Assembly: GCF_902459465.1 (NCBI RefSeq)
Contig: NC_047066.1
Location: forward strand, 19,468,001 to 19,532,000
Reading direction: 5' to 3'
Length of the DNA: 64,000 nt
DNA from: Asterias rubens
Lineage: Eukaryota
Shown: positions 5,985-63,054 of the stretch, piece by piece
How the letters are laid out: every line of letters begins with the position of its first letter
How positions within the stretch are numbered: the first letter of the stretch is position 1
The notes under the pieces: model-generated
What the model saw: the letters and a program-made list of their open reading frames with translations, nothing else
Databases searched by the model: none
Told to the model about the DNA's origin: nothing
Position numbers and translations under genes: made by a program

Positions 5985-8900
5985 TTATTTATTGCGACGC
6001 ATTTTCATTTCGGTCTTTACAATTTGTCTTCCCGGCCAAGTAAACCAACGAATACCGCGATACTCGATACCCGAAGCGTTCACTCGATGCGAATATTCGC
6101 CGTTCAGGTTCGATTCTACTGCACAGTCATCGAACCACCAACCTGCCTTGACGAGACCTGCACAGTTTTGGACATCGTTGTTGTCATTGTCGTTGTCATA
6201 GTTTGAGAACGTACGGCCATTCAACGACTCAAAAACACCACCTGATAATAAATAAAGGAAAATTTAAATAGGGACTTCGAGAAAATAGTCATTTTAAAAC
6301 AATAAGCCTGTACACAAAATTACAAACATACTTTGGTTATGCAACTAAGCCGTGGTTTTGGCATAATTTTATTCTCATTTGAAAGTCCAACCAACAACAA
6401 AGTGAAAGTCCATTGACATCAGTCGATATCGGAGAAAGTCGTGAAACTGATAGTTTCTTACCTTTGCAACCAATGAGCTCAATCCGCATTGTTGGCCATT
6501 TCTCATATGTTGTCGGTCTAATGCGAATGTACCGTGCTTGGATAGGCTCGTCGAACATGCTGGTAACGGGGGTTTCATGGTCCGTATTGCCATCGAATAC
6601 CTGCAAAGGAGCACATTTTCGTTTTTTTTGTAGTTTTGTTTATGTAACAACTATTAATAAAAGGTATAAAAAGCGTTCCCGAATGAAAAATGTTCGATCC
6701 GTCGACAAATGAAAAAAGAAAGTACATCAAGTGAATAATAGTTGTCGTTGCCCCCCCCCCTTAATTTTTGATATATTTATTGATTATTATTATTGTGGTG
6801 TGGGGGGGGGTACTTCTTATTCTGAAGGATATTATTCCATGCTCATTTATGTATATGTTGTGTTATCTGGCATGAGTTTGCTTGAAAATGCTTTCAGTTC
6901 AGTCTTCTGAACAAAACGATATCGTGTGCAACAAAACATTCTTTCCAACAAAAAGATATATCAAAAATATCATGGTATTGAAAGAACCACACATTCGCAT
7001 CACATTGCACTCACCTTTGCTGTATCCTGCGATGTCCCACCAACGTAGTACCATTGGCTCTGGTGAGAACTATACTCCACCGTGTACTTCTTTACCCACT
7101 CCCCATCGCCGGAAGCGTAACTTCCCTGCATAATAACACCTTCAACCTGGGTTTGTGTCTTTAGATCCACCTGAAACCATTCTGCTTTATCTGTTTCCGG
7201 GCACCAGTTGCCATCCACACTATTTAGCCGCCCATTACCCTCAGAACAATAAACCAACTCATTTTTGTAAACACTTGATGCTGTGATGCTCGAGTCAGGG
7301 ATGGTGTTGTCTTCCATCCCAAGACGTTGGTGACAAGTTCCATTGACTGAAAAAGCAAAACACGGTCGTTGTAAATAACGTCAAGAGTCATTTTTATTTT
7401 ATTCTTTTCACAAGGGAAGGTGGGACTCAAAAATGCAACCTTGCCTTCCAGTTCAAATTGAATGTTTAAGTTTTCACATAATTCTTATCTCAAAAATTAC
7501 GTATCATTTAAGCATATTTAGTAGTAGTTAATAAAAAGTCGAGTGTTCTCAAGATGTTGCACAGCTAGATGACAATTTCTTCGAAATTGTAGACACAATT
7601 TAACAATTTAATATTAAAAATGAAAATGAAAAAAAAAAAAAACCATGTGGCTCGGGTTTTATTTGGGCATATTCTGTGACAATGACATTAAACCATTTTA
7701 GCATTAGACCTAAGCAGTACAATCCAATATACCTGTAGGTTCAATTCCAGAGACTCCGATACTGAGGGCGTACTTGTCTCCTGTAATGCTGAAGGGTGAT
7801 GTCATTAGAGACATTTTCTGACTCTCTTCATCTGTGAGGTCCACACGGATTGTCCAATTAGATCCATTCTTAGTCAGCAGACGGAGTGCTTCATTTCCAA
7901 GCCAGAACACACTGCTGACATCACCAAATCCTTCTTTGTACTCGAGCCAAGTCCGAGTGAAGTTCACAGACCCGTCGTGGCGCCTTTGGAAAACCTTTGA
8001 ACAAAGTCAATAGAGTGCGCCCCATTTAAATGAGTCTGTGATGTTTAAATATTGCATTAGCAAAATATCTTGCCAAAATGGTTGACTGCTCGATCCCCTG
8101 TCGTTGTCATCAAGGAAAAATACATACTTGTGAATTTCTATTCACGAGTGAATGGACTGAGAATGGACTCCTGATGAAATGAATGCGATGTCGCGTAATT
8201 CACGAGCCTTTAATTGTGACGTCAGATGTACAGACTATCAGTAATGGTATCTAGATCTCTGCAAGCATAATTTGTTTAATTTTAGAGAAGAGAACATGAC
8301 CGGGAGGCATTAGCAGGGTGCTATTTGTTTCGAGTGCAGATGCAAATGTTCACCCAAGTAGCACCAAGGTTCAATTTTGTGCCCACACAGCTAAAATTCT
8401 ATGTGCACACCGTTTGCTTATTTTTCACTAATAATCTGGTTTGGTGGGATGTAGTTCAAGTGACATTTGTGTTTTGTTCTATTGTCATACACACTACGTA
8501 TACTTGATTGCCGGGACTGGTTGGTGCTATTTCAATCATTTGACCTACCAACCAGCCTTTGTCATCTTCCATATGACAGTAGACATCTTTCTTCTCTTTC
8601 ATGCCTGTATGTGACTGTATACTGATCGGGTAAACTCCACTGGTAGTGCTACCGGCATCAAACCAAGCTTGACAGTCGGCATGTTCTGAGAGAGAAAACA
8701 AAACACCACAAAACATCGATTTTTTTTAGGGACATTTTAGCTTGAATTGCATTGGGAATTGTTTTTTCCCAAAATGCATTTGGGAAGAATTATTTCATTT
8801 TAAAAGTTGGCCCGATATGTCAGGACCAAGGTGCACCCCCCCCCCTCAAGAAAAACGGGGGAGAAAGAAAAAAAGAGCAAAGAAGAAGAAGAAGAATACA

Positions 8901-25300: not shown

Positions 25301-28300
25301 ATCTTAGTCTTATTAATAAAGCGTGCTTCCATATAGTTAGCATTTTAGTCAGTTTGGATAAAGGAACCGACATTATGGAAGCATTGAGGGTTGTTGCTTG
25401 GTTAGGGCGTGTAAACAAAGGTTGACCTAAAGAAGCTCTCTGGACAGCAGTTTTTTTTTCAAATTGACTTACCAACCAGCCTTTGTCACCTTCCATATCA
25501 CAGTAGACCTCTTTCATGCCTATATGTGAGTTTATACCGATGTTGTAAGGTCCACTTGTAGTGCTACCGGCATCAAACCAACTTCGACAGTCGGCATGTT
25601 CTGGGAACAAAAAACAAGATGCAGTAGAGTTTACGGGAAACATTTGGCATACAAACAAAATAAGTACATTTCGGAAAAGTAAAAGCAACACATATAGACT
25701 GTACCTCGCGCAAATTCAAGTTCTTGTATGACATCACTTTTTTTTTACTTCACTTGTTAGCACGAGTTTCAAGGGAATCAAAATTCCTTCCCCAAACAGG
25801 GTAACGAAGAAGTTTACAAGTACAACATTCGCATAATCTCTACAGACATGGCAGAGCAATGACCAACTCAACCGTAGAGTAAAACTACACGTCTAGTTTA
25901 CCGTTTGACTTTATAGTAGTCATCGTGCTTTCTTCATGACAATCGAAATAGTCATGAATCTCCTCTACGTCATCGGTGAACAGCGGTTGGTCGGTGTAGT
26001 ATGGTTCATACGGTCTCTTGGGTGCCCGATTGACTCCCCCTGGTAGTATAACGGTACATGAGCATCGTTCTTGTTGGGTGAGAGGCATCACCCAGCGGAG
26101 TTTGCCTTCATGGTCAGGCTCTTGTTCAAAATAACACTTCTTCTTCGCTGTGACTGAGTGAAATAAAGAATATAGAAATTCTCGAAAAAATAGGCCTAAG
26201 TTTCTTTGAAACTGATGCATTACTAACTTGCATTCACTTGTTGTGCTTGAAAAAAAGTAAGAAAGTGTCGCAAACAAAACAATACTAGATAGAAAACCAG
26301 CCACTTTGAGAGGAAACCAAATGTAATGTCGTAATATTGAAGTGAAAAACACCCTTATCAAAAAACATCAGTGCAAAATTATATTGGTATTACTTAATTA
26401 AAAATTGAAGAAGGAAACAAGGACACGACGTTATTCAAAATGGATATAACCTGACCTTAATGGTACCTTAGGTCAGACGTACGGGCATATACAACAAACC
26501 AGTTACGTGATAGGCCTTGCCTTATGTTTTGTATTAAAAGGCCAGTAAACACAAGCCTGGTTGCCTATTGTTGAGAATTAGACACGGGCAAACTGAAGCA
26601 GAAAATTTCATTAGCGATTTTGAATAGGTACAGAAGCGACGAGTAGCTAAAAATAACACATTATAAATTAATATGCTGGCCAAATACATAAAGCTGCTAG
26701 CAGAAAATTCTGCTTTGCTAAGTAAGAAATAAAGGAGGTACCAATTGCAGCAATGGAAAAAGTACGGTATTCTGGCTGGTAATAATGTTTTGCTAAGCAC
26801 GAGGTTTCTGTGTTCAACAAGTTTTAATTGAAGGCCCATTAACACCAGCCTGGTTGCCTATTGTTAAGAATTAGACACGGGGGAAACTGAAGCAGAACAT
26901 CTTGTTATGCGATTGTGAATAGGTGCAGAAGCGAAGGGTAGCTAAAAATAACGCTTAATTAGATCCCAAAATCAAAATTGGCCCCATTTTCCATACTAAT
27001 TGTCTGTTCTCGTGTTTTTGGACCTACTTTGTAAAATAGTTATTAAATAAAGGGAGGGTCCTGATAGCTTTGTTCCGTTTTCAACAGACGGCTGGTTAGA
27101 AATAAAAACTTGTATTAGTAGCTTTCAGTTAAGATTATGCTGCTCTGATGATATCTTGAAATTTTCACATTTCTTGTGTCTGAATTGAAGTAAGGGGTGG
27201 TAGTGTAACTACTAATTAAAAGGGTAAACAAATTAAATTTGTAAAACGAAAACAATTGTGTTGAATTTACTTTAATATCATAATAAATGTATAGTTGAAG
27301 GAACACAACGCGTTTGGATTTGGATAAAGTTTAATAACAAAATATACTGCAGCTTCCGATAGTACAAAGCATTGTAGAGACGTTTCATTCCAAAGTAACT
27401 TGGTCATATATAGTTTTAAGTCCTTAAACTTGAATATTATCATTTGGGTGTTACTCAAATCAGTAACGCTTCCCAGATCGCGTATCCCTAGTGGAGTAAT
27501 GGTTTTGTATTCTTCCTGCGTGGACATAATTCGCTCCGGATTTTCGGCGACATCTCAAAAACGAGACCACCTTTTTAAATGATCACATAGATCACATGGT
27601 TTATACATCTACATTTATCTATGATTAAAACAATCGAGCGATTCTATGTTAATAAAAAAAACTCACTTTAGGTGCCTATTGCTCATGAGTGTTGCTCGGC
27701 CCTTATCCTTTTATTGATGACGTCATGGCTAATATTTTAACCACATTGCTTACTTTTGTTACTGAGTTTTTGTGAAAGACATCTTTTTCTCACTAAAATA
27801 TTTGAATTGAATTCGACATCTCAGATTTGGTCTCGAATTCAAGGCATCTGAAAGCACACAACTTGTGTGACAAGGGTGTTTTTTTTTTCTTCCATTATTC
27901 TCTCGCAACTTTGACGACCAAATATTGAGTCAAATTTTCACAGGTTTATATTGTATGCATATTATTTAGATACATCAAGAGAGAATACTGGTCTTTGAAC
28001 GTTACCAAAGGGTCCAGTGCACTGGACAAAGGCACTCCAGGGCCTTTAAAAAATGTCCTCAATTTTTTTTATCTGCCTTGTATATAGCCTAACAGTGGTA
28101 CTGCATATACAAGTTCGTGATAAATTTTTTCTCACCTTGGTGATGCACGCATTTTCCAAATTCATCCACCCGCATTCCAACACATCGGTTGAGCATATAA
28201 GTTTAAAAATTGCACATTTGTACGTTAGATCATTTGCAATTACCAAAATATGTAATGGCTTTAAAGTTAATGTTCTTACCTGCATGAATAATTATGAGCA

Positions 28301-28328
28301 AGAGCAAGACGGTTCGCAGAAAGTCCAT
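22324..28328 (-). CDS. P4: secreted fibrinogen-related protein with nested discoidin domain, 473 aa, intact
   Basis: Exons 28280-28328 (MDFLRTVLLLLIIIHA), 25902-26153, 25473-25600, 24991-25252, 24451-24785, 23013-23151, 22324-22580 total 1422 nt, open frame, same intron phases as P2. Confidence 0.9.
24238..24357. mobile_element. Palindrome of about 120 bp (core of a foldback-type element) in P4 intron 5
   Basis: GGTTTTCAACTAGTGGTTTAA.CCC..CGAGGCCTGGTTCTT...AAGAACCAGGCCTCG..GGG.TTAAACCACTAGTTGAAAACC. Confidence 0.8.
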
Positions 28329-29517
28329 GGCGTGTAGGGTACGAGTGTCTTTCATCCAGCGGTACTGATTATAAATAAAGGCTGGTCATAATAGGCAGCC
28401 TATGCCTATCACAACTGCCACGCGTATTTTTGTTAGCAACTGCTTATAGAATTTTGTTTGAAGGCCAATCAAAACAAGCCTGATGTCTATTGGTGAGAAA
28501 AAAAGGAAAAAAAACCAGCAAACTAGAGCAGAAAATTTCATTAGCGCTTGCTTGGGAATTGCAGAGGTTACTTAATTTGTCATTAGGTGCAGACACACAT
28601 GGTTACTGCCTGATAGGTGGATAATAACGTTCGACTGGTTTCGAAACTATGGTTTAGCCTATGCATAAATGATGATTTTTTTTCGAGTTCTTTACTCACG
28701 ATCAAGACAGTGCACAGATATGAAAAACATGTAGCGTTCCTTTTCTTTTAACGATAACAAAAAGACGAGCTCGAGATTGAACTAGTATGTTTATAGATTC
28801 TAGTGGTTTTAATCTCGAACACATATCACACTTATGACTATAAGACACAGTCTGGATTGTCTGAATGAAACCACAAGAGTTGTATACTTTTATTGTTGAC
28901 TTTGATAATTAATTGTACTGAATTACCTTATGACAACGTTGCTGTGCGTTTAGATGTGGTCAAATAATAAGAGCAATTTACAACAATTGATTCAAATTTT
29001 ATTATATACATGTACACGTGTAATTCTGTTATTTTGTAAACTTATAGAAAATAGAATTGGTAATACAATAATAATTTGTATAAGTCGATTTTTTGATGCA
29101 GCGTACAGTTGCAGTGAATCGCAAATTGATCATTATGGTATACGCAGTGAAATCAAGAGTTTGACTGGCTCTACGTGTATGTGTGCAATATTAAATAATA
29201 ATTATGATAATTAATTAACAACTTACTAACACAAATGGGATACCATAACAATAACGCCACATACATCATTTTTGCACCAGAGTGACCCGATTTTTTTGGT
29301 CAATACCAACGTAGGCCTATCTTTTGAATCAACATTTTATCTTACTAAATACAAATTACGTGCAATTCAAATTTAAAAAGTAAACTAACCATCTGTGTGA
29401 ACTTTTAAAATAAGGGATAATGTAATACTCAGCTACTAGACGAATAATATTTTGTAGTATTCCAAAGATACATAACTCAGCTATTCAAGTTAGAGTACAA
29501 GTAGCATTCCGTCCATT

Positions 29518-32500
29518 TTAATTGCGACGCATTTTCATTTCTGTCTTTACGATCTGTCGTCCCGGCCAAATGGACGACCGAATACCGCGATACTCGGTAC
29601 CCGAAGCGTCCACTCGATGCGAATATTCGCCGTTCAGGTTCGATTCTACGGCGCAGTCATTAAACCACCAACCTGCTTTGACGAGACCTGTAAGGTTTTT
29701 AACGTCGTTGTTGTCATTGTCATTGTCATATGTTGAGAAATGACGGCCATTCAACGACTCAAAATAGCTAACTGAAAAAAGAAAAGGGGGAAAAGTAAAG
29801 AAAGTAAAAAAATGTGTTGATATTCATCAGTTTCAGAGTCATTTAAAGTCATTCACGATAATTTGATCAAATCAATCTAAATGGTACCCATGCAGGAAAT
29901 TGGATTTTGAAAAAGTTTCTCTGTTTAGCATCTTCATCATTGTATGTTCGTAAAAAAAAAAAATCGTAATGCGCGGCCCTATTATGTACTTAATTAAACA
30001 ACTGATATTGTATAAATCGTGAAAACAAAACTTATGTATAGCACATTACCTTTGCAACCAATGAGCTCAATCCGCATTGACGGCCATTCGTGATACGCTA
30101 TCGGTCTGATGCGAATGTACCGTGCTTGAACAGGCTCGTTGAACATGCTTGTAACGGGGGTGAAACTGTCGGTGTTGCCATCGAATTTCTGTTAAGAAAG
30201 TGAGCGGTGGTAACACTCAGTCGAGATGGCACATTCTTCACTGTTCTCTAAAAAAGTGCAATGCCCTGCGGAACCAAAGCCCTTGGATATCCTTAACTAG
30301 ACCGTAGGATCGGTATCTGGTCACAAAGTTGTGTAATTATTGTGTTTATAGGGTGAAATGTTCACTGCTTTGTGCACAAAATTGTACGGATTATACCGAC
30401 CACTCTCGTAGCAAGCGACCGGTTCTGAGGATTCTCACTTCCTTCCCCGCCAATACAGCCTGTTCTTTATCAAAGCTAAATGGGTAGCCAGTAACTAGTA
30501 AAGTCTTTTTGCAATTGTGTGGTTCTTGGGGTTAAGGCTTGTAATGTTTTGTTGATTTACCAACAACTTACAACACGAGACAAATGCAATGATCACGACC
30601 AAATCATTTAAAACAAAAAGTAAAGAAAAGTGAGATGCTCGGCCAACACGAGTCAAACTTAGCCGGCATCGCTGAATGAATTCTGTTTTCTGACTTTGGT
30701 GTTGGTTTTTCAAAACACGGTTAGAAAATAATTAGTGAACAATTATTGCATAAAAAGTATAGTTAAAAAAGATCAAATAAAATATAAAACAGCAGAACAA
30801 TTGAATAATTTGGAAAGCTAGGTGACAGCAAACTAATACCAGGTAAACTGTTATTGTGTGGTCTGAGCATTACCGGACACATGGTCACATTACCGAGAAT
30901 AATACATTCACCTGATCAGTCTGCTGCCACCTAGCGTTCAAAAAGTGCCCAATTGGAATTTAAAAAAATATTTGTTTTATTTAGTGTATTGGTCTTACTT
31001 GAGCAAGATCCTGGGATGGCCCACCACCAACGTAGTGCCACTTAAGCTGGTCGCAGCCGTACTGCACCTTGAATACCGTCACCCATCCAGTAGATCCTGA
31101 GGAACAAAAGCCCCCCTGTGTAATGACACCTACAACCTTTGTTTGTTGATTCAGTTCCTTCAGATCGACCTGAAACCAAGGTACATGCATGTCGTCAGTT
31201 TGAGGGCACCAACAACCTCCAGCGTGTAGCCGTCCCTTTTCATCCTGTCCATAATCATACGGATCCCAGGGTAATTCAGACCACCAATCACTCGATGCCG
31301 TGATGCTAGAGTCAGGGATGATCCAGTCTTCCATTCCAAGTGGCTGTCTACAGAGACCATTACCTGAACAACAAAGTATGAGTGGCATTTGTTTTATATA
31401 AATTGGTATACTGCTTTCAAAGTTCAGTTTTGGCCGGCACATTAATGAAACTAAACACAAACGGCGGTTTAGTCAGCAGTCTCATGGATATTATGAAAAC
31501 ATACGAGATTGGCGTTGCGTCTTTCTTCATTCAATGTTGACAAATCTGATCTCATTGCATTTAGCCTATTCAATACAGTTTCAGAAAGCCTACCATTTAT
31601 AACCCAAGGGCTGCCAATGCTGATGGTGTACTTGTCTTCTGTGATGCGGAAGGGCGATGCGGTCAGAGTTGTTTGCAAACCATTTACATCAGTGGGTTCC
31701 ACAATGACCTCCCAAATAGATCCATCATCTACATTGGTCAACAGACGGAGCGCTTCATTTCCAAGCCAGAACTCACCGCTGAGGTTCCCAAAGCCTACTT
31801 TGTATTCGAGCCAGTTTCGAATGAAGTTCATAGACCCATCCTGGCGTCTTTGGAAAACCTTGAAATAAAACCAACAGAGGGCGGCATATATGTAATACAT
31901 CAGCGATATCTTACCCAAGATGGAAGCGCCATAATATGATCAAATAGAACCACGTGTAAATATTATGATCAATAGAACCACGTGTAAAAGAAACAGCGAG
32001 ATCTCAATCGTGAAAAAAAGTAACTATTATACAAAACATTGCAGTTTGACAACTGGCGATGCTTATCTGAATTTACCTGTCTATACCGAGAGATGAACTA
32101 ACTGATAGAAACCTCACAGTCTTCTAAATGTACAGATTTTATTTCACCATTTCAGAGGCGGACCCATGAATATTGCACGGGTTGGTTTAGGTGTGTCAAA
32201 TAATGCTATAACTAAACGGCAGACACGGCTCGTTTATGTACGAGTCAATGGAGAATTCCCTTGAGACAGCGGACCAGCCTATGTTGTAAAAAAAATCCAG
32301 CGGTTAAACGACCCTGCCTTGTACTTGTTGGAATCGGTTTACTTACGTTGTTTTATGTGATAGCAAACGCTTTTTATCGCTCAAAGTACCCAATCCAATG
32401 AAATTATGTCCCTTTTAAAAGCTTTAATTTAAATAAACGTTTCCTGAAATCAGGAAAACTCCTGAGAAATCACATTCCTGTATTTTAGGAAATACCCATG

Positions 32501-43390: not shown

Positions 43391-43800
43391 GTGTGTGCAT
43401 GGTGGTTGGTGTTGTGATTTGTGTGTGTGTACGTGCGTGCATTAGGATATGTGTACAGGTTATGACTTAGAAGACTCAAAACTGTTCATGTGGATTGGTC
43501 TTGTGAACGCCCCCCCCCCCCCCTCCCCTGGTCTGTCCTTATATTGGACTATAGGCCAACACATTTGTCATGGCTAAAACAAAGTAAATGTTGTCTGAGC
43601 AATATTTCTAGAAGTACATGTACTCGTAGTATCAACTCCAAACTTGGTTTGTGGATTGGTCTTTGTTTTTGGATTGGTCTGTGGACCCCCCCCCCCCCCC
43701 CACCCCACCCAAGAAGCTTATTGCTTTTGGACCCTAGGCCAAACTTTTAGGTCATTATGACTAAAACAAAAAGAATGTTGCCTGCCTACCATACTACCCA

Positions 43801-45670
43801 CTCTGCCTTCCCTCACACCTTCTCACCTATCCTTCCCCACTCCGTTTTCCCAGCTCTGCCTTCCCTCACACCTTCTCACCTATCCTTCCCCACTCCGTTT
43901 TCCCAGCTCTGCCTTCCCTCACACCTTCTCACCTATCCTTCCCCACTCCGTTTTCCCAGCTCTGCCTTCCCTCACACCTTCTCACCTATCCTTCCCCACT
44001 CCGTTTTCCAAGCTCTGCCTTCCCTCACACCTTCTCACCTATCCTTCCCCACTCCGTTTTCCCAGCTCTGCCTTCCCTCACACCTTCTCACCTTCTCACC
44101 TATCCTTCCCCACTCCGTTTTCCCAGCTCTGCCTTCCCTCACACCTTCTCACCTATCCTTCCCCACTCCGTTTTCCCAGCTCTGCCTTCCCTCACACCTT
44201 CTCATCTATCCTTCCCCACTCCGTTTTCCAAGCTCTGCCTTCCCTCACACCTTCTCACCTATCCTTCCCCACTCCGTTTTCCCAGCTCTGCCTTCCCTCA
44301 CACCTTCTCACCTATCCTTCCCTACTCCGTTTTCCCAGCTCTGCCTTCCCTCACACCTTCTCACCTATCCTTCCCCACTCCGTTTTCCCAGCTCTGCCTT
44401 CCCTCACACCTTCTCACCTATCCTTCCCCACTCCGTTTTCCCAGCTCTGCCTTCCCTCACACCTTCTCACCTATCCTTCCCCACTCCGTTTTCCCAGCTC
44501 TGCCTTCCCTCGCACCTTCTCACCTATCCTTCCCCACTCTGTTTTCCCAGCTCTACCTTCCCTCACACCTTCTCACCTATCCTTCCCACTCCGTTTTCCC
44601 AGCTCTGCCTTCCCTCACACCTTCTCACCTATCCTTCCCCACTCCGTTTTCCCAGCTCTGCCTTCCCTCACACCTTCTCACCTATCCTTCCCCACTCCGT
44701 TTTCCCAGCTCTGCCTTCCCTCACACCTTCTAACCTATCCTTCCCCACTCCGTTTTCCCAGCTCTGCCTTCCCTCACACCTTCTCACCTATCCTTCCCCA
44801 CTCCGTTTTCCCAGCTCTGCCTTCCCTCACACCTTCTCACCTATCCTTCCCCACTCCGTTTTCCCAGCTCTGCCTTCCCTCACACCTTCTCACCTATCCT
44901 TCCCCACTCCGTTTTCCCAGCTCTGCCTTCCCTCACACCTCCTCACCTATCCTTCCCCACTCCGTTTTCCCAGCTCTGCCTTCCCTCACACCTTCTCAGC
45001 TATCCTTCCCTACTCCGTTTTCCCAGCTCTGCCTTCCCTCACACCTTCTCACCTATCCTTCCCCACTCCGTTTTCCCAGCTCTGCCTTCCCTCACACCTC
45101 CTCACCTATCCTTCCCCACTCCGTTTTCCCAGCTCTGCCTTCCCTCACACCTTCTCACCTATCCTTCCCCACTCCGTTTTCCCAGCTCTGCCTTCCCTCA
45201 CACCTCCTCACCTATCCTTCCCCACTCCGTTTTCCCAGCTCTGCCTTCCCTCACACCTCCTCACCTATCCTTCCCCACTCCGTTTTCCCAGCTCTGCCTT
45301 CCCTCACACCTTCTCACCTATCCTTCCCCACTCCGTTTTCCCAGCTCTGCCTTCCCTCACACCTTCTCACCTTCTCACCTATCCTTCCCCACTCCGTTTT
45401 CCCAGCTCTGCCTTCCCTCACACCTTCTCACCTATCCTTCCCCACTCCGTTTTCCCAGCTCTGCCTTCCCTCACACCTTCTCACCTATCCTTCCCCACTC
45501 CGTTTTCCCAGCTCTGCCTTCCCTCACACCTTCTCACCTATCCTTCCCCACTCCGTTTTCCCAGCTCTGCCTTCCCTCACACCTTCTCACCTATCCTTCC
45601 CCACTCCGTTTTCCCAGCTCTGCCTTCCCTCACACCTTCTCACCTATCCTTCCCCACTCATCTTTCCCAG
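43801..45670 (+). repeat. 53-bp minisatellite, about 35 near-identical copies, strongly pyrimidine-rich on +
   Basis: Unit CTCTGCCTTCCCTCACACCTTCTCACCTATCCTTCCCCACTCCGTTTTCCCAG. Confidence 0.97.
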
Positions 45671-45930
45671 CCTTCTACCCTACCCACTTTGACAATGATT
45701 AAATCTCCTTTAAAAACAAATGTAATGCAGAAAGGTTAGAAATGGGGGGGGGGTGGTTGTAGTGTGTATAAGTGTTTTCACCCTTTGGTCTTTGCAACCT
45801 ACATGGCAGAGTTACCGCAGAACAACACTGCACAACACTGGCTAAGATTATTGGTGAAAAAAAAACCAACACTGTTCTACATGTGTCAAATGTCAAGAAA
45901 CAGACTGGCTAGCAGGGCATTTGCGTTTAT

Positions 45931-55440: not shown

Positions 55441-55839
55441 TTTTATCCCAAATCTTTATCATCTGTAATTTATTTTTTGTCTAAATTTGATATATTATTT
55501 AAATTCGTATACATGTATTGTAAAACTCTTGAAATTCGGAATACATAATGGGCTCATTTTATACGACATGAGCCTTTTAAAATTTCTCTCGCGATGTCTT
55601 TATGTCTGCCCGACTGCGCTGCAACCATCGTTTCAATACTTTACGTATCTTATTTATTACCAAAAAACATAAATAAAAACACTCAAAAATAAAATGGTAC
55701 AATTTTAAAAACAAATACTTTTAGTCCCACTACTTAAGCATACTTTAACTAAAGCCAGGTACACTATTGCTAACAATTACACACGCAAGCACCCCCTACT
55801 GATCTACAGAAAAATAAAGTAAGGACTAAGAGAAGCTTT

Positions 55840-58800
55840 GAACACAGAAGAACTGAGAGTATGACCTTAGGTCACAGAAGGACTGAGAATATGCCCTCTG
55901 TTAACAGAAGGTTTAAGAGTGTGCCCTATGAACACAGAAGGACTAAGAGTGTGCCCTTCGATTACAGAAAGACTAAGATTGTGCCCTCTGATCACAGAAG
56001 GACTAAGAATGTGCTCTCTGAACACAGAGTGAATGAAAGTGTGCCCTCCGATTACAGAAGGACTAAGAGTGTGCCCTCTGATCACAGAAGGACTTAGAGT
56101 GTGCCCTCTGATTACAGAAGGACTAAGAGTGTGCCCTCTGATTACAGAAGGACTAAGAGTGTGCCCTCTGATCATAGGACTGGGAGTGTGCCCTCTGATT
56201 ACAGAAGAACTAAGAGTGTGCCCTCTGATCATAGGACTGGGAGTGTGCCCTCTAAACACAAAAGGACAGAGTTAGCCCTCTGAATACAATTGGATCAAGA
56301 TTGTGCTCTCTGAACACAGAAGGAATAAGATTGTGCCCTTTGAACCAATAAGGACTTAGAAATAGCCATCTTAAAACAGTCGACTTATATTGTCCCCTTC
56401 TGATTGGAGGACAAAAACTAACCATGTGCCCTCCAATCACAGAAGGGCAAAGAGTTAGCCCTCTGGACACAGACGGACTAAGAGTATTCCCGCTGGATAC
56501 AGAAGGACCAGGAGTGTGCCCTCTGAAACAGAACTAACCATGTGCCCTCTGATCACAGAACGACAAAGAGTTAGCCCTCTGGACACAGACGGACTAAGAG
56601 TGTTCCTGCTTGATACAGAAGGACTAAGAGTGTTCCCGCTGGATACAGAAGGACCAGGAGTGTGCCCTCTGAAACAAAACTAACCATGTGCCCTCTGATC
56701 ACAGAAGGAAAAAAAGTTAGCCCTCTGGACACAGACAGACTAAGAGTGTTCCCGCTGGACACAGATGGACCAAGAGTATGCCCTCTGACACAGAAGGACC
56801 AAGAGTTTGCCCCTCTGATCCCCTGACACAGAAGGACTGAGAATGTGCCCCTCTGATCTCAGAAGGACTGTCCTCTGACACCACAGAAGGACTAAAATTG
56901 TGCCTTCTGAACACAGAATGACATCGAGTTAGCCCTCTGGACACAGACAGACTGAGATCTGACCACAGAATGACTGAGAGGTTCCCTCTGAACACAGAAT
57001 GAACAAGAGTGAGCCCTCTGCAAAGAAGGGAATGAAATTATGCCCTTTAAACACAGAAGGACTGCCCTCTGACCACAGGAGGACTATGATTATACCCTCT
57101 GAACCCAGAAGGACTAATATTGTGCCCTCTAAACACTAAAGGACAAAGAGTTAGCCCTCTACTGAACACATAAGGACTAAGAGTTAGCCCTCTACTGAAC
57201 ACAGAAGGACTACAATTGTGCACTCCTTACATGGAATGACTGAGAGTGTGCCCTCTCAATACAGAAAGGCCAAGAATAAGCCCTCTGCGTGAAGGACTAA
57301 GAGTTGGCCCTCTGAACGCAGAAGGACTAAGATTGTGCGCTCTGAACACAGAAGGGCCAAGAGTTAGCCCTCTGCACGAAGGACTAAGATTGTGCCAACT
57401 GCACAGAAGTAATATTGCCCTCTGAACACCAAAGGACTGAGCTTAAGCCCTCTAATTACAGAAGGACTAAGAGTGTGCCCTCTGAACAAAGAGTGAACGA
57501 AAGTGTGCCCTCTGAACACAGAAGGTCCCAGATGGAGCCCTCTGAAAACAGAAGGACTAAGATTGTGTCCTCTAAACACAGAAGGACTAAGAGTAAGCCC
57601 TCTGATTACAGAAGGACTAAGAGTGTGCCCTCTGAACACAGAGTGAATGAAAGTGTGCCCTCTGAGCACAGAAGGTCCCACATGGAGCCCTCTGAAAACA
57701 GAAGGACTAAGATTGTGACTGAGAGTGTGCCATTTAAACACAGAAACGCCACAAGACAGCCCTCTGAACACAGAAGGACTAAGAGTTAGCCCTCTGAACA
57801 CAGAAGGCATAAGATTGTTCCCTCTGAACACAGAAGGAATAGGATTGTGCACTCTGAACACAGAAGGACCGATATTGTGCCCTCTTACGACAAAAGGACT
57901 GAGAGTGTGCCCTTTAAACACAGAAAGGCCACGAGACAGCCCTCTGAACACAGAAGGACTAAGAGTTAGCCCTCTGAACACAGAACGACTAAGATTGTGC
58001 CCTCTGAACACAGAAGAACTAAAAGTGTGCCCTCTGGACACAGACGGCCTAAGATTGTTCCCTCTGAACACAGAAGGCATAAGATTGTGCCCTCTGACCA
58101 CAGCAGCACTAAGATTGTGCGCTCTGATTACACTGTGCCATCTAAACACAGAGTGAATGAAAGTAAGCCCTGTGAACAGAAAAGGTCCCAGATGGAGCCC
58201 TCTGAAAACAGAAGGACCAAGATTGTGCCCTTTGAACACAGAGGAACTAAGATTGTGCCCTCTTAAGACAACAGGACTGAGAGTGTGCCCTTTAAACACA
58301 GAGAGGCAATGGGAGAGCCCTCTGAACACAGAAGGACTGAGATAGACCTCCGATTACTGAAGGAACACAGAGTAAATGAAAGTGTGCCCTCTGAACACAG
58401 AAGGTCCCAGATGGAGACCTTTGAAAACAGAAGGACTAAGATTGTGCCCTCTGAACACAGGAGAACTAAGATTGTGCCTTCTTAAGACAAAAGGACTGAG
58501 AGTGTGCCCTTTAAACACAGAAAGGCAACGAGACAGCCCTCTGAACACAGAAGGACTAAGAATTAGCCCTCTGAACACAGAACGACTAAGATTGTGCCCT
58601 CTGAACACAGAAGAACTAAAAGTGTGCCCTCTGGACACAGACGGCCTAAGATTGCTCCCTCTGAACACAGAAGGAATAAGATTGTGCACACTGATTACAG
58701 AAGGAATAAGATTGTGCCATCTGAAAACAGAAGGACTAAGATTGTGCCCTTTATGACAAAAGGACTGAGAGTAAGCCCTCTGAAAACAGAAGGACTGAGA

Positions 58801-61645
58801 TTGTGCCCTCTGAAAACAAAAGGACTAAAATTGCGCCCTCTTATGACAGAAGGACTGAGAGTAAGCCCTCTGAAAACAGAAGGACTAAGATTGTGCCATC
58901 AGCACAGAACTGAAATAATGCCCTCTGAATACAGAAGGACTGAGAGTGTGCCATCTAAACACAGAAACGCCACAAGACAGCCCTCTGAGCACAGAAGGAC
59001 TAAGAGTTAGCCCTCTGAACACAGAGTGAATGAAAGTGTGCCCTCTGAACACAGTAGGTCCCAGATGGAGCCCTCTAAAAACAGAAGGACTGAGAGTGTG
59101 CCCTCTGAAAACAGAAAGAGCACGAGACGGCCCTCTGAACACATAAGGACTAAGCGTTAGCCCTCTGGACAAAGACGGCCTAAGATTGTTCCCTCAGAAC
59201 ACAGAAGGTCTCACATGGAGCCCTCTGAAAACAGAATGACTGAGATTGAGCCCACTGAAAACAGAAGGACTAAGATTGTGCCATCAGCACAGAACTGATA
59301 TAATGCCCTCTGAATACAGAAGGACTGAGAGTGTGCCCTCTAAACACAGAAAGACCACACGACAGCCCTCTTAACACAGAAGGACTAAGAGTAAGTCCTC
59401 TGATTACAGAAGGACTAAGAGACTGCCTCTGAACACTGAAGGAATAAGAGTTAGCCCTCTGTACACAGAAGGACTAAGAGAGTAAACAGAGTAAATGAAA
59501 GTGTGCCCTCTGAACATAGATGGTCCCAGATGGAGCCTTCAAAAACAGAAGAACTTTCTGAACACAGAAATATCACGAGACAGTCCTCTGAACAAGCAGG
59601 ACTAAGATTGTGCCCTCTCATGACAAAAGGACCGAGAGTGTGCCCTTTAAACACAGAAAGGCCACAGGACAGCCCTCTGAACACAGAAGGACTAAGAGTT
59701 AGCCCTCCGATTACTGAAGGAACACAGAATGACTTAAAGTGTGCCCTGTGAACACAGATGGTCCCAGATGGAGCCCAGACGGACTAAGATAGTGCCCTCT
59801 GAAAACAGAAGGACTAAGATGGAGCCCTCTGAACACAGAAGGACTAAGATTTTGCCCTCTGAACACAGAAGGACTAAGAATGTGCCCTCTGACCACAGCA
59901 GGACTAAGATAGTGCCCTTCTGAACACAGGACTAAGATTGTGCCCTCTTACGACAAAAGGACCGAGAGTGTGCCCTTTAAAGACAGAAAGGCCAAGAGAC
60001 AGCCCTCTGAACACAGGACTAGAGATAGACCTCTGATTACTGAAGGACAAAGAATGTGCCCTCTGAACACAGAGTGAATGAAAGTGTGTCCTGTGAACAC
60101 TGAAGGTCCCAAATGGAGCCCTCTGAACACAGAGTGAATAAAAGTGTGCCCTGTGAACACACAAGGTCCCAAATGGAGCACTCTGAAAACAGAAGGACTA
60201 CGATTGTGCCCTCTGGACACAGAAGGAATAAGAGTTAGCCCTCTGATTACAGAAGGACTAAGAGTGTGCCCTTTTATGACAAAAGGACTGAGCGTTAGCC
60301 CTCTGAACACAGGACTAAGATTGTGCCACCTGCACAGGACTGAAATAATGTCCTCTGAACACAGGAGTACTGAGAATGTGCCTTCTGAACACAGAAAAGC
60401 CACGAGACAGCCCTCACACAGAAGGACCAAGATTGTGCCCTTTGAACACAGAAGGACTACGTGTTAGCCCTCTGGACACAGACGGCTTAAGATTGTTCCC
60501 TCTGAACACAGAGTAAATGAGAGTGTGCCCTCTGAACACAGAAGGTCCCAAATGGAGCATCTGAAGACAGGACTAAGATTGTGCCCTCTGAACACAGGAC
60601 TACACTGTGCCCTCTGATCAGGGTAGACTAAGATAGTCCCCTCTTATCACAGGACTCACCATGTCTGCTGTGATCACAGAAGGACTAAGAGTCTGCCCTC
60701 TGATCACAAAAGGACTAATAGAGTGCCCTTGTAACAACAAATGACTAAGAGTGTGCCTTTTGCACACAGAAGGTCCCAGATGGAGCCCTCTGAAAGCAGG
60801 ACTAAGATGTTGCCCTATGACAAAAATGTGCACAGAACTGAAATAATGCCCTCTGAACACAGAAGGACTGAGAGTGTGCCTTCTGCAAACAGAAGGACTA
60901 AGATTGTGCCCCCTGAGTACAGAAGGACAAAGAGTGTGCCCTCTGGACACAGACAGCCTAATATAATTCCCTCTGAACACAGAAGGAACACTATTGTGCC
61001 CTCTGACCACAGCAGGAGTAAGAGTGTGCGCTCTGAGTACAGAAGGACTAAGATTGTTCCCCCGAACACAGAAGGAACAAGATTGTGCCCTCTGACTACA
61101 TCAGGACTGAGAATCTGAACACAGAAAGTCCCAGATGGAGCCCTCTGAAAACAGGACTAAAACTGTGCCCTATGAACACAGGTGGACTAAGAGTCTGCCC
61201 TCTGATCACAAAAGGACTAATAGAGTGCCCTTGTAACAACAAATGACTAAGAGTGTGCCTTTTGCACACAGAAGGTCCCAGATGGAGCCCCCTGAAAGCA
61301 GGACTAAGATGTTGCCCTCTGACAAAAATGTGCACAGAACTGAAATAATGCCCTCTGAACACAGAAGGACTGAGAGTGTGCCTTCTGCAAACAGAAGGAC
61401 TAAGATTGTGCCCCCTGAGTACAGAAGGACAAAGAGTGTGCCCTCTGGACACAGACAGCCTAAGATTGTTCCCTCTGAACACAGAAGGAACACTATTGTG
61501 CCCTCTGACCACAGCAGGACTAAGATTGTGCCCCCTGATAACAGAAGGATCAAGAATATACCCTGTGATTACAGAAGTACTAAGAGTTTGCCCTATGATC
61601 ACAGAAGGACTGAGACTGTGCTCTCTGAACCCAGAAGGACCAAAG
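55840..61645 (+). repeat. 5.8-kb degenerate 30-bp minisatellite with higher-order duplications
   Basis: Consensus CCCTCTGAACACAGAAGGACTAAGAGTGTG (roughly 190 units) with recurring variant units; block near 60683-61100 recurs near 61184-61530. Confidence 0.95.
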
Positions 61646-62250
61646 AGTATGAAGAAAGTGAAGAATAAGAGTTTGAAAGAGTAGTTAAACGAAGAAAACA
61701 ATCTAAATTATAGGGGGGCAAAACTACTACAATAAAGTTACCAAATATACCATTACAAATTTAACATCACAGTAGAACAGAACATAAACTTGTCACTAAA
61801 CAAAAAAAATCTTATAAATACACCATCGCAAGCAAATTTTTGGCATCAGATTTTGTCTGATAATCATCCTGATCAGCTTAGTTTAATTAGCAGGGCCACC
61901 ACGTGCAGGTGCCAGGATACCAGCCCCACACGCTTTCGAGATCGTAAGGGCCATTGCACCTCCTTCCATTGGAGGGTCCGGTCCGCCACCTCAAGTTGCC
62001 CCAAGGTAGTCCCCTACTCTACTCACGCGGTCCCTAGCCGAAAAGACTAGGAACTCCTCCCGTTTAGCCAACCATTTGTGATAACACCGGCGCATCCTCA
62101 GGGGAGGAGCCCAAATGCACCTTTAAGATCAGCCACCCATTGTAGCGAGCCGGAAGTAGGACCCCACAAGCCACGTGCAAGTGTCCAGGTCCCTTTAGTT
62201 TAATTTTGGAGTTATCCAAAATTTACCGCACCTGCAATCAAACATTCCCT

Positions 62251-62763
62251 CCACCAATTGTATATTGCCACCACCAATTGTATCCTCCCACCACCAGTTG
62301 TATCCTCCCACCACCAATTGTATCCTCCCACCACCAATTGTATCCTCCCACCACCAATTGTATCCTCCCACCGCCAATTGTATCCTCCCACCGCCAATTG
62401 TATCCTCCCACCGCCAATTGTATCCTCCCACCGCCAATTGTATCCTCCCACCACCAATTGTATCCTCCCACCACCAATTGTATCCTCCCACCGCCAATTG
62501 TATCCTCTCACCGCCAATTGTATCCTCCCACCACCAATTGTATCCTCCCACCACCAATTGTATCCTCCCACCGCCAATTGTATCCTCCCACCACCAATTG
62601 TATCCTCCCACCGCCAATTGTATCCTCCCACCATCAATTGTATCCTCCCACCACCAATTGTATCCTCCCACCGCCAATTGTATCCTCCCACCGCCAATTG
62701 TATCCTCCCACCACCAATTGTATCCTCCCACCACCAATTGTATCCTACCACCACCAATTGTAT
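62251..62763 (+). repeat. 20-bp minisatellite, about 25 copies
   Basis: Unit CC(A/G)CCAATTGTATCCTCCCA. Confidence 0.97.
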
Positions 62764-63054
62764 GTTCTCTTACCACTAATCCAATCGTCACACCTCCAGT
62801 CGAGAAGCTGCATCACCAAGGCTCCAAGATCTCCAATTGCGTCGCGCAAAAATCGCGTATGTGCATGCTTGCTTGCAATGGTGTATTTATTTACAGATAC
62901 TTACTGTTACGGTACTACAAAAACAGCTAACTACTACAAAATTACAAAACTAACACGTCTTACTATTGATGATGCTTGGTTGTTCATTCATGATCCAAAG
63001 ATGAACTGCTAAGATGTCATGATTTTATCTGCTTTGCTCTCCTTTACCCTGCAG

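Follow-up and report, generated by a model that had tools for sequence, protein, structure and literature searches.

Introduction

The closest described relatives of the domain discussed here are the C2 domains of factor V, factor VIII and lactadherin (PF00754), and spikes 1-3 of factor V C2 are membrane-binding loops (PMC11098723). The discoidin domains of neuropilin (b1 and b2) and of DDR share the fold and, judging from the titles of the PDB entries, hold their ligand, a peptide carboxy-terminus or collagen, with the apical loops. In an engineered 'discobody' (PDB entry 4pt6, according to its title), the spike loops are rewritable to antibody-like specificities on an unchanged barrel; being an artificial construct, it gives no evolutionary evidence. 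Ficolin-like proteins, tachylectin 5 and the mollusc FREPs (fibrinogen-related proteins) are secreted Fibrinogen_C proteins. Here we describe a tandem array of six genes of the starfish Asterias rubens, located in and just below a 64,000-nucleotide stretch of DNA (the window; positions 19,468,001 to 19,532,000 of contig NC_047066.1). Each gene encodes a predicted secreted fibrinogen-related protein with a nested F5/8C discoidin domain, and differences among the paralogs are concentrated in three loops at the apical face of that domain.

The starfish domain has the fold of the factor V, factor VIII and lactadherin C2 domains, with about 32% sequence identity and the same amino- to carboxy-terminal cysteine pair. 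The membrane-binding spikes of those domains align with the variable loops of the starfish proteins (PMC11098723), and the Trp-Trp pair in loop 1 of factor V C2 is likewise found in starfish paralog D. Unlike the C2 domains, the starfish domain is nested in a fibrinogen-related domain instead of being carboxy-terminal, and in most paralogs its spikes are polar or acidic and not hydrophobic. Neuropilin and DDR are receptor ectodomains, whereas the starfish proteins are predicted to be secreted and lectin-like. In this they resemble the ficolin-like proteins, tachylectin 5 and the FREPs, with which they also share organisation as a tandem, multi-copy family with gene conversion. However, where the variable part of invertebrate fibrinogen-related lectins is the fibrinogen domain or an added immunoglobulin domain, in the starfish array it is the loops of the inserted discoidin domain that vary, and the exon of the fibrinogen P subdomain that is most conserved. 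A search of the literature for this gene family, or for work on selection in the discoidin spikes of echinoderms, returned nothing relevant.

Variation among the paralogs

The six genes are on the minus strand, in the order of transcription D, C, B, A, E and F. The window contains genes A to D in full and gene E only by its first exons, and the remainder of E and all of F are located just below the window start. The discoidin domain is complete in the encoded proteins and split over two exons, with phase-1 introns on either side. The discoidin exons and loops of the four window paralogs are the following:

7015..7346, minus strand: gene A, discoidin exon 1 (exon 5), Pfam F5_F8_type_C E = 3.4e-15, GT-AG junctions; loop 1 at 7272-7249 (VYKNELVY), loop 2 at 7197-7180 (ETDKAE), loop 3 at 7122-7099 (SYASGDGE)
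6462..6600, minus strand: gene A, discoidin exon 2 (exon 6), Pfam F5_F8_type_C profile 87-127
13183..13514, minus strand: gene B, discoidin exon 1; loop 1 at 13440-13417 (VYEAFPGY), loop 2 at 13365-13348 (RYETAS), loop 3 at 13290-13267 (SYLSTDDE)
12387..12525, minus strand: gene B, discoidin exon 2
24451..24785, minus strand: gene C, discoidin exon 1; loop 1 at 24711-24688 (VYQRELVY), loop 2 at 24636-24619 (QTAKEE), loop 3 at 24561-24526 (NYHDLSYEGKDE)
23013..23151, minus strand: gene C, discoidin exon 2
30999..31363, minus strand: gene D, discoidin exon 1; loop 1 at 31289-31251 (13 residues), loop 2 at 31202-31179 (QTDDMHVP), loop 3 at 31112-31086 (GFCSSGSTG)
30050..30188, minus strand: gene D, discoidin exon 2

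A preliminary description of the locus had claimed that variation among the paralogs is concentrated in these three spike loops, on a nearly fixed framework. Its span ends on exact exon edges, position 7015 being the 3' end of discoidin exon 1 of gene A and 31363 the 5' end of that of gene D. Both claims hold. The framework motifs and loop strings that it quoted were all located in the window genes; GRL, WFQVDL, ARYIRI and MRIELIGC are invariant in all four window copies, while gene B has ITSSG for ITASS and the motif VIxQG is either VIMQG or VITQG. Exon 6 of gene A contains the conserved framework FDGNTD...ARYIRI...MRIELIGCK and a fourth apical loop, TTYEKWPT. The loops vary in sequence and in length: loop 3 of gene C has an insertion of four residues, and the Trp-rich loop 1 of gene D is longer by five, but the differences persist among genes of equal loop length (A, B, C and E).

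Of the 33 loop columns, 32 are variable among the window paralogs A to D, compared with 64 of the 140 domain columns outside the loops (Fisher p = 7e-9), and the mean pairwise amino-acid difference is 0.81 in the loops versus 0.31 in the rest of the discoidin domain. When the most variable eight-column windows are ranked, the top three are the three loops, and none of 20,000 random window triples matches their mean. The loops of the preliminary description had been chosen by eye; a second set was therefore defined from the structure. With these classes the mean variability is 0.66 for apical loops, 0.49 for basal loops and 0.19 for strands (apical over basal, p = 0.026; basal over strands, p = 4e-5). 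Across the whole gene, discoidin exon 1 is the most variable exon (0.40), and exon 7, which encodes the fibrinogen P subdomain, the least (0.18).

Fold and ligand face

An AlphaFold model of the discoidin domain of gene E, made from a 59-sequence alignment, has a pLDDT (predicted local distance difference test) of 94.9 and a pTM (predicted template modelling score) of 0.90. Foldseek superpositions of the model on factor VIII C2, lactadherin C2 and neuropilin b1 give template modelling (TM) scores of 0.85-0.88; PDB entries matched in this range are 7s0p, 3bn6, 2qqn and 1czs. The eight-stranded beta-barrel of the solved C2 and b1 domains is recovered. In the HMMER alignment to factor VIII C2, loop 1 corresponds to the M2199/F2200 spike, loop 2 to the V2223 loop, loop 3 to the L2251/L2252 spike and the fourth apical loop to W2313-H2315. 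The residue numbers are those of the usual factor VIII numbering, which agrees with the titles of PDB entries 9d5d and 3hnb. The model and the alignment place the three loops on the apical spike face. Together with the membrane-binding role of the factor V spikes (PMC11098723), the structural match and the spike mapping make the premise sound that the loops belong to the ligand face of the F5/8C domain, as the preliminary description had stated.

Across 59 unrelated discoidin domains, too, variability is highest in these three loops, with an entropy of 3.1-3.3 bits versus 1.43 bits for the strands. The combination of a fixed barrel and variable spikes thus belongs to the fold and not to this cluster, and the concentration of variation in the spike loops is the expected behaviour of the discoidin fold in a duplicated family.

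Rates of substitution in loops and barrel

The syntenic cluster of Asterias amurensis served for comparison, with five ortholog pairs between the two species. Substitutions were counted with the Nei-Gojobori method, summed over the five species pairs, and partitions were fitted by maximum likelihood in IQ-TREE with the Goldman-Yang (GY) codon model. By counting, the loops contain 43.5 nonsynonymous and 11.5 synonymous differences, a ratio of nonsynonymous to synonymous rates (dN/dS, or omega) of 1.00, and the rest of the domain 56 and 39, a ratio of 0.40 (loops versus rest, Fisher p = 0.02). In an earlier run, with gene F paired to the wrong A. amurensis gene, these ratios were 0.94 and 0.30. 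The gene first paired with F, at a synonymous divergence (dS) of 0.77, proved to be an extra paralog and was rejected; the true ortholog (protein P0198, locus L042) was found via the members of the cluster.

By maximum likelihood, omega is 0.75-0.89 for the loops of the preliminary description and 0.33 for the rest of the domain. For the structure-defined classes it is 0.57-0.63 in apical loops, which is significantly below 1, 0.52 in basal loops and 0.25 in strands, and for the non-discoidin parts of the genes it is 0.32-0.34. Fixing the loop omega at 1 costs only 1.0-1.5 in 2dlnL (twice the log-likelihood difference), which is not significant. Constraint on the spike loops is thus about 2.5-3 times weaker than on the barrel, and their evolution is indistinguishable from neutral, while the barrel is under clear purifying selection, with a dN/dS of 0.25-0.4. 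Purifying selection is seen individually at 10-11 of 28-30 loop sites; since this is about a third of them, the loops are neither junk nor free of constraint.

Single sites were analysed with a custom grid-based procedure similar to FUBAR (fast unconstrained Bayesian approximation), the likelihood of which equals that of IQ-TREE to four decimals. Column 29, the fourth residue of loop 1, has a posterior for positive selection of 0.99 with 11 sequences and 0.97 with eight, but of 0.85 with 13, when the correct ortholog of F and one more copy from A. amurensis are added. With these 13 sequences no site has a posterior for positive selection above 0.9. Being unstable to the addition of two sequences, the signal at column 29 was rejected as evidence. 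The eight top-ranked sites change likewise: seven are apical with 11 sequences (p = 0.0013), but only four with 13.

Introns were tried as a neutral yardstick and rejected, several having been swapped between paralogs, with divergences of 0.17-0.48. Those that look orthologous diverge by 0.03-0.08, and the loop dN of genes A and D exceeds this by a factor of only about 1.5, which is not significant.

The preliminary description had raised positive selection on the loops as a possibility, to be checked by codon site models including orthologs, and had named a dN/dS at or below 1 as the result that would speak against it. The values found, 0.75-1.0, are in that range. Neither of the signs by which a positively selected immune-recognition family would be known, an omega significantly above 1 in the recognition surface or a robust site signal, was found, and a divergence driven by positive selection is not supported.

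Mosaic history of the genes

The paralogs are mosaics on the scale of exons (genes A to E; A. amurensis loci L037, L039 and L041), and the distance between the same two genes ranges from 0.03 to 0.28 from exon to exon. Gene B, for example, shares exon 2 with gene C (4% divergence) but exons 4, 5 and 7 with gene E (3-5%). In the approximately unbiased (AU) test, the discoidin part and the remaining exons each reject the tree of the other (p = 1e-4 and 2e-7). Discoidin cassettes of the B/E type group by species, which points to gene conversion after speciation. Several introns are non-homologous between supposed orthologs, and the A. amurensis gene at the position of C is B-like in exons 3-7, with no C-type discoidin cassette found at that position of the A. 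amurensis cluster. That cluster (L041:17748-22450 and L039:14204-17822) also contains an extra F-related paralog upstream of D, which is absent from the A. rubens window.

Loop 1 of gene D differs between the species by a compensated frameshift, at about 31277-31263 in the window compared with L039:22893-23254 in A. amurensis. A two-base and a one-base indel, and not a series of substitutions, shift the frame over about ten bases, so that A. rubens has ELPWD where A. amurensis has VTRG. In the same gene, loop 3 is identical between the species and loop 2 nearly so. At column 29, near-identical copies differ in all three bases of the codon (AAA versus GCT). Codon models make no provision for in-frame indels, the compensated frameshift or gene conversion, which breach their assumptions and make the estimates fragile; multi-nucleotide codon changes, the compensated frameshift and recombinant histories inflate dN/dS.

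State and expression of the copies

Genes A, C, D, E and F have open reading frames, and those of A, D, E and F are intact in both species. Gene B contains a premature in-frame TAA at 13209-13207 on the minus strand, inside the discoidin domain. Two independent studies (X1 and X3) yielded contigs with the same stop codon, while the B-like genes of A. amurensis have GG at this position and an intact codon. One contig carries the splice of exon 3 to exon 4 of gene B (joint 14028/14365), from which it follows that the gene is transcribed. Exon 5 of gene A was not found in runs labelled as RNA, and is present only in small runs with no recorded library type. An apparent cluster of variants in loop 1 of gene B, seen in contigs only, was rejected as polymorphism, as it is the exon of gene E aligned to B.

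All 13 sequences have a cysteine near the start of the discoidin domain, in C...PLGMED, and another near its end, in ELIGC; the two probably pair as a disulfide that ties the termini together. The cysteine pair of the P subdomain (NCA...C..SNLNG) is kept in genes A, B, C, E and F, while gene D of both species is without one of these conserved cysteines and reads NLTG.

A probable explanation: constant barrel, mutable spikes

Given the observed location of the variation, its rates and the mosaic history, the explanation that we favour, and consider somewhat better than an even bet, is that the discoidin barrel is a constant scaffold and the apical spikes a weakly constrained, mutable binding surface on which change is near neutral. 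Purifying selection holds the barrel while the three spikes change at close to the neutral rate. The changes in the spikes are point substitutions, indels that keep the frame and, at least once, a compensated frameshift, and stretches of the discoidin exons are swapped among paralogs by gene conversion. The outcome is spikes of very different chemistry, with loop 1 of gene D Trp-rich and hydrophobic and the loops of A and C polar or acidic, beside a fibrinogen P subdomain kept nearly constant. With spike chemistries so different, the paralogs most likely bind different ligands, and diverged preferences among them are plausible.

A number of observations weigh against this explanation. In the closest three comparisons the loops contain about 16.5 nonsynonymous and 1.5 synonymous differences (5:1 for A, 6:0 for D and 5.5:0.5 for B versus E), although this excess is not significant. 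A ratio near 1 over whole loops could mask a few truly selected residues at the tips, and column 29 has high posteriors in two of the three data sets. Among near-identical environmental alleles, represented by three exon 5 peptides from environmental assemblies (P0012 and P0127 among them) in which only amino-acid differences were counted, seven of 11 differences from the reference are located in the loops (binomial p = 0.006). One position in loop 2 of gene F is E, Y or I across these alleles and the A. amurensis ortholog. The premature stop of gene B and the missing P-subdomain cysteine of gene D mean that some copies may be decaying rather than specialising. Finally, the difference in ligands among the paralogs is something we infer from the loops.

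Several of these points would fit an explanation to which we give about one chance in four, namely that the spike tips are under diversifying selection, positive or balancing, for new ligand specificities, as immune-recognition families are, and that the ratio near 1 is a mixture of selected and constrained sites. The counts in the closest pairs, column 29 and the apical top sites of the 11-sequence run favour it, as do the loop-concentrated allelic differences and the threefold position in gene F. Against it, the loop omega does not differ from 1 and that of structure-defined apical loops is significantly below it; with 13 sequences both the site signal and the apical excess are lost; loop 2 is without signal; and the loop dN of A and D does not significantly exceed intron divergence. 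What signal there is depends on the multi-nucleotide changes, compensated frameshift and recombinant histories that inflate dN/dS.

A more elaborate version, which we regard as doubtful, draws an analogy with the complementarity-determining regions (CDRs) of antibodies: the spikes might be germline-encoded CDR-like loops of two-headed recognition proteins of sea stars, in which micro-indels with compensated frameshifts, and the trading of discoidin cassettes between tandem copies, would give rise to variants that diversifying or balancing selection would then maintain. This would account both for the allelic differences clustered in the loops and for the species-specific sets of cassettes.

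It is improbable that the variation is functionally meaningless, with loops that drift in spikes no longer used or in decaying genes. A loop omega of about 1, the premature stop of gene B in two independent data sets, the cysteine missing from gene D and the fair variability of the basal loops (0.49) would agree with such drift. However, purifying selection acts on about one loop site in three, loops 2 and 3 of gene D are nearly or fully conserved across two species despite the change in loop 1, and apical loops are more variable than basal ones; the framework omega of 0.25-0.4 and the frames of A, D, E and F, intact in both species, indicate working proteins. An artefact, whether of misalignment in loops of unequal length, of faulty exon models or of errors in the assembly, is very improbable and largely refuted. 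Although indels blur residue homology, chiefly for C in loop 3 and for D and F in loop 1, and synonymous divergence also looks higher in the loops, the exon models of A and E agree with NCBI proteins, contigs of other studies reproduce the sequence, the loops of A, B, C and E differ at equal length and the A. amurensis copies share the layout.

Gene models and surrounding DNA

Exon models were assembled from conserved peptide anchors and GT-AG junctions. The model of gene A agrees with NCBI protein XP_033627169.1 (P0199), and that of gene E with LOC117290043 (P0151). From amino- to carboxy-terminus, the encoded protein consists of a signal peptide, a cysteine-containing amino-terminal domain, the fibrinogen A and B subdomains, the F5/8C discoidin domain and the fibrinogen P subdomain. 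Features not given above are:

5988..9218, minus strand: gene A, exon 2 to the stop codon (amino-terminal cysteine domain, fibrinogen A/B, nested discoidin, fibrinogen P)
about 10093-10049, minus strand: gene A, signal-peptide exon
363..606, minus strand: gene E (LOC117290043), exon 2

Exons 5 and 6 pass the gathering score of PF00754, with 56.7 and 34.5 bits (cut-off 28.2). The fibrinogen profile PF00147, of which the A, B and P subdomains are covered, matches exon 4 at positions 46-125 (72 bits) and exon 7 at positions 145-219 (59.5 bits), while exon 3 matches at positions 4-43 with 21.4 bits, just below the cut-off of 22, as a short piece scanned alone. The discoidin domain is therefore inserted between PF00147 profile positions 125 and 145. 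The amino-terminal cysteine domain, of about 75 residues, with the motif DYFEC and encoded at 8984-9218 in gene A and by the equivalent exon 2 in every copy, has no Pfam match. A protein of Acanthaster planci (P0041) has a related amino-terminus ahead of discoidin domains, with no Fibrinogen_C match recorded.

Elsewhere in the A. rubens genome there are more than 80 further discoidin exon matches (contigs C15, C24, C12, C17 and C8), many in tandem clusters. In related proteins of A. rubens and A. amurensis (P0153 and P0154), two or three discoidin domains are nested in a single fibrinogen domain. Upstream of the array, at 43757-45739, 55800-61700 and 62195-63012 of the window, are long tracts of tandem repeats, in which base composition is strongly skewed and the repeats give rise to very long open frames.

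Significance

As the evidence stands, this duplicated discoidin family behaves as its fold predicts, and indels, multi-nucleotide changes and gene conversion can easily lead astray the tests that codon models make of such loops. If ligand binding truly differs among the paralogs, the array would show in compact form how a repertoire is built in an echinoderm, with a constant fibrinogen head and a discoidin head in which the spikes are free to change. It would then be useful to comparative immunology, and would be a natural counterpart of the engineered discoidin binders.

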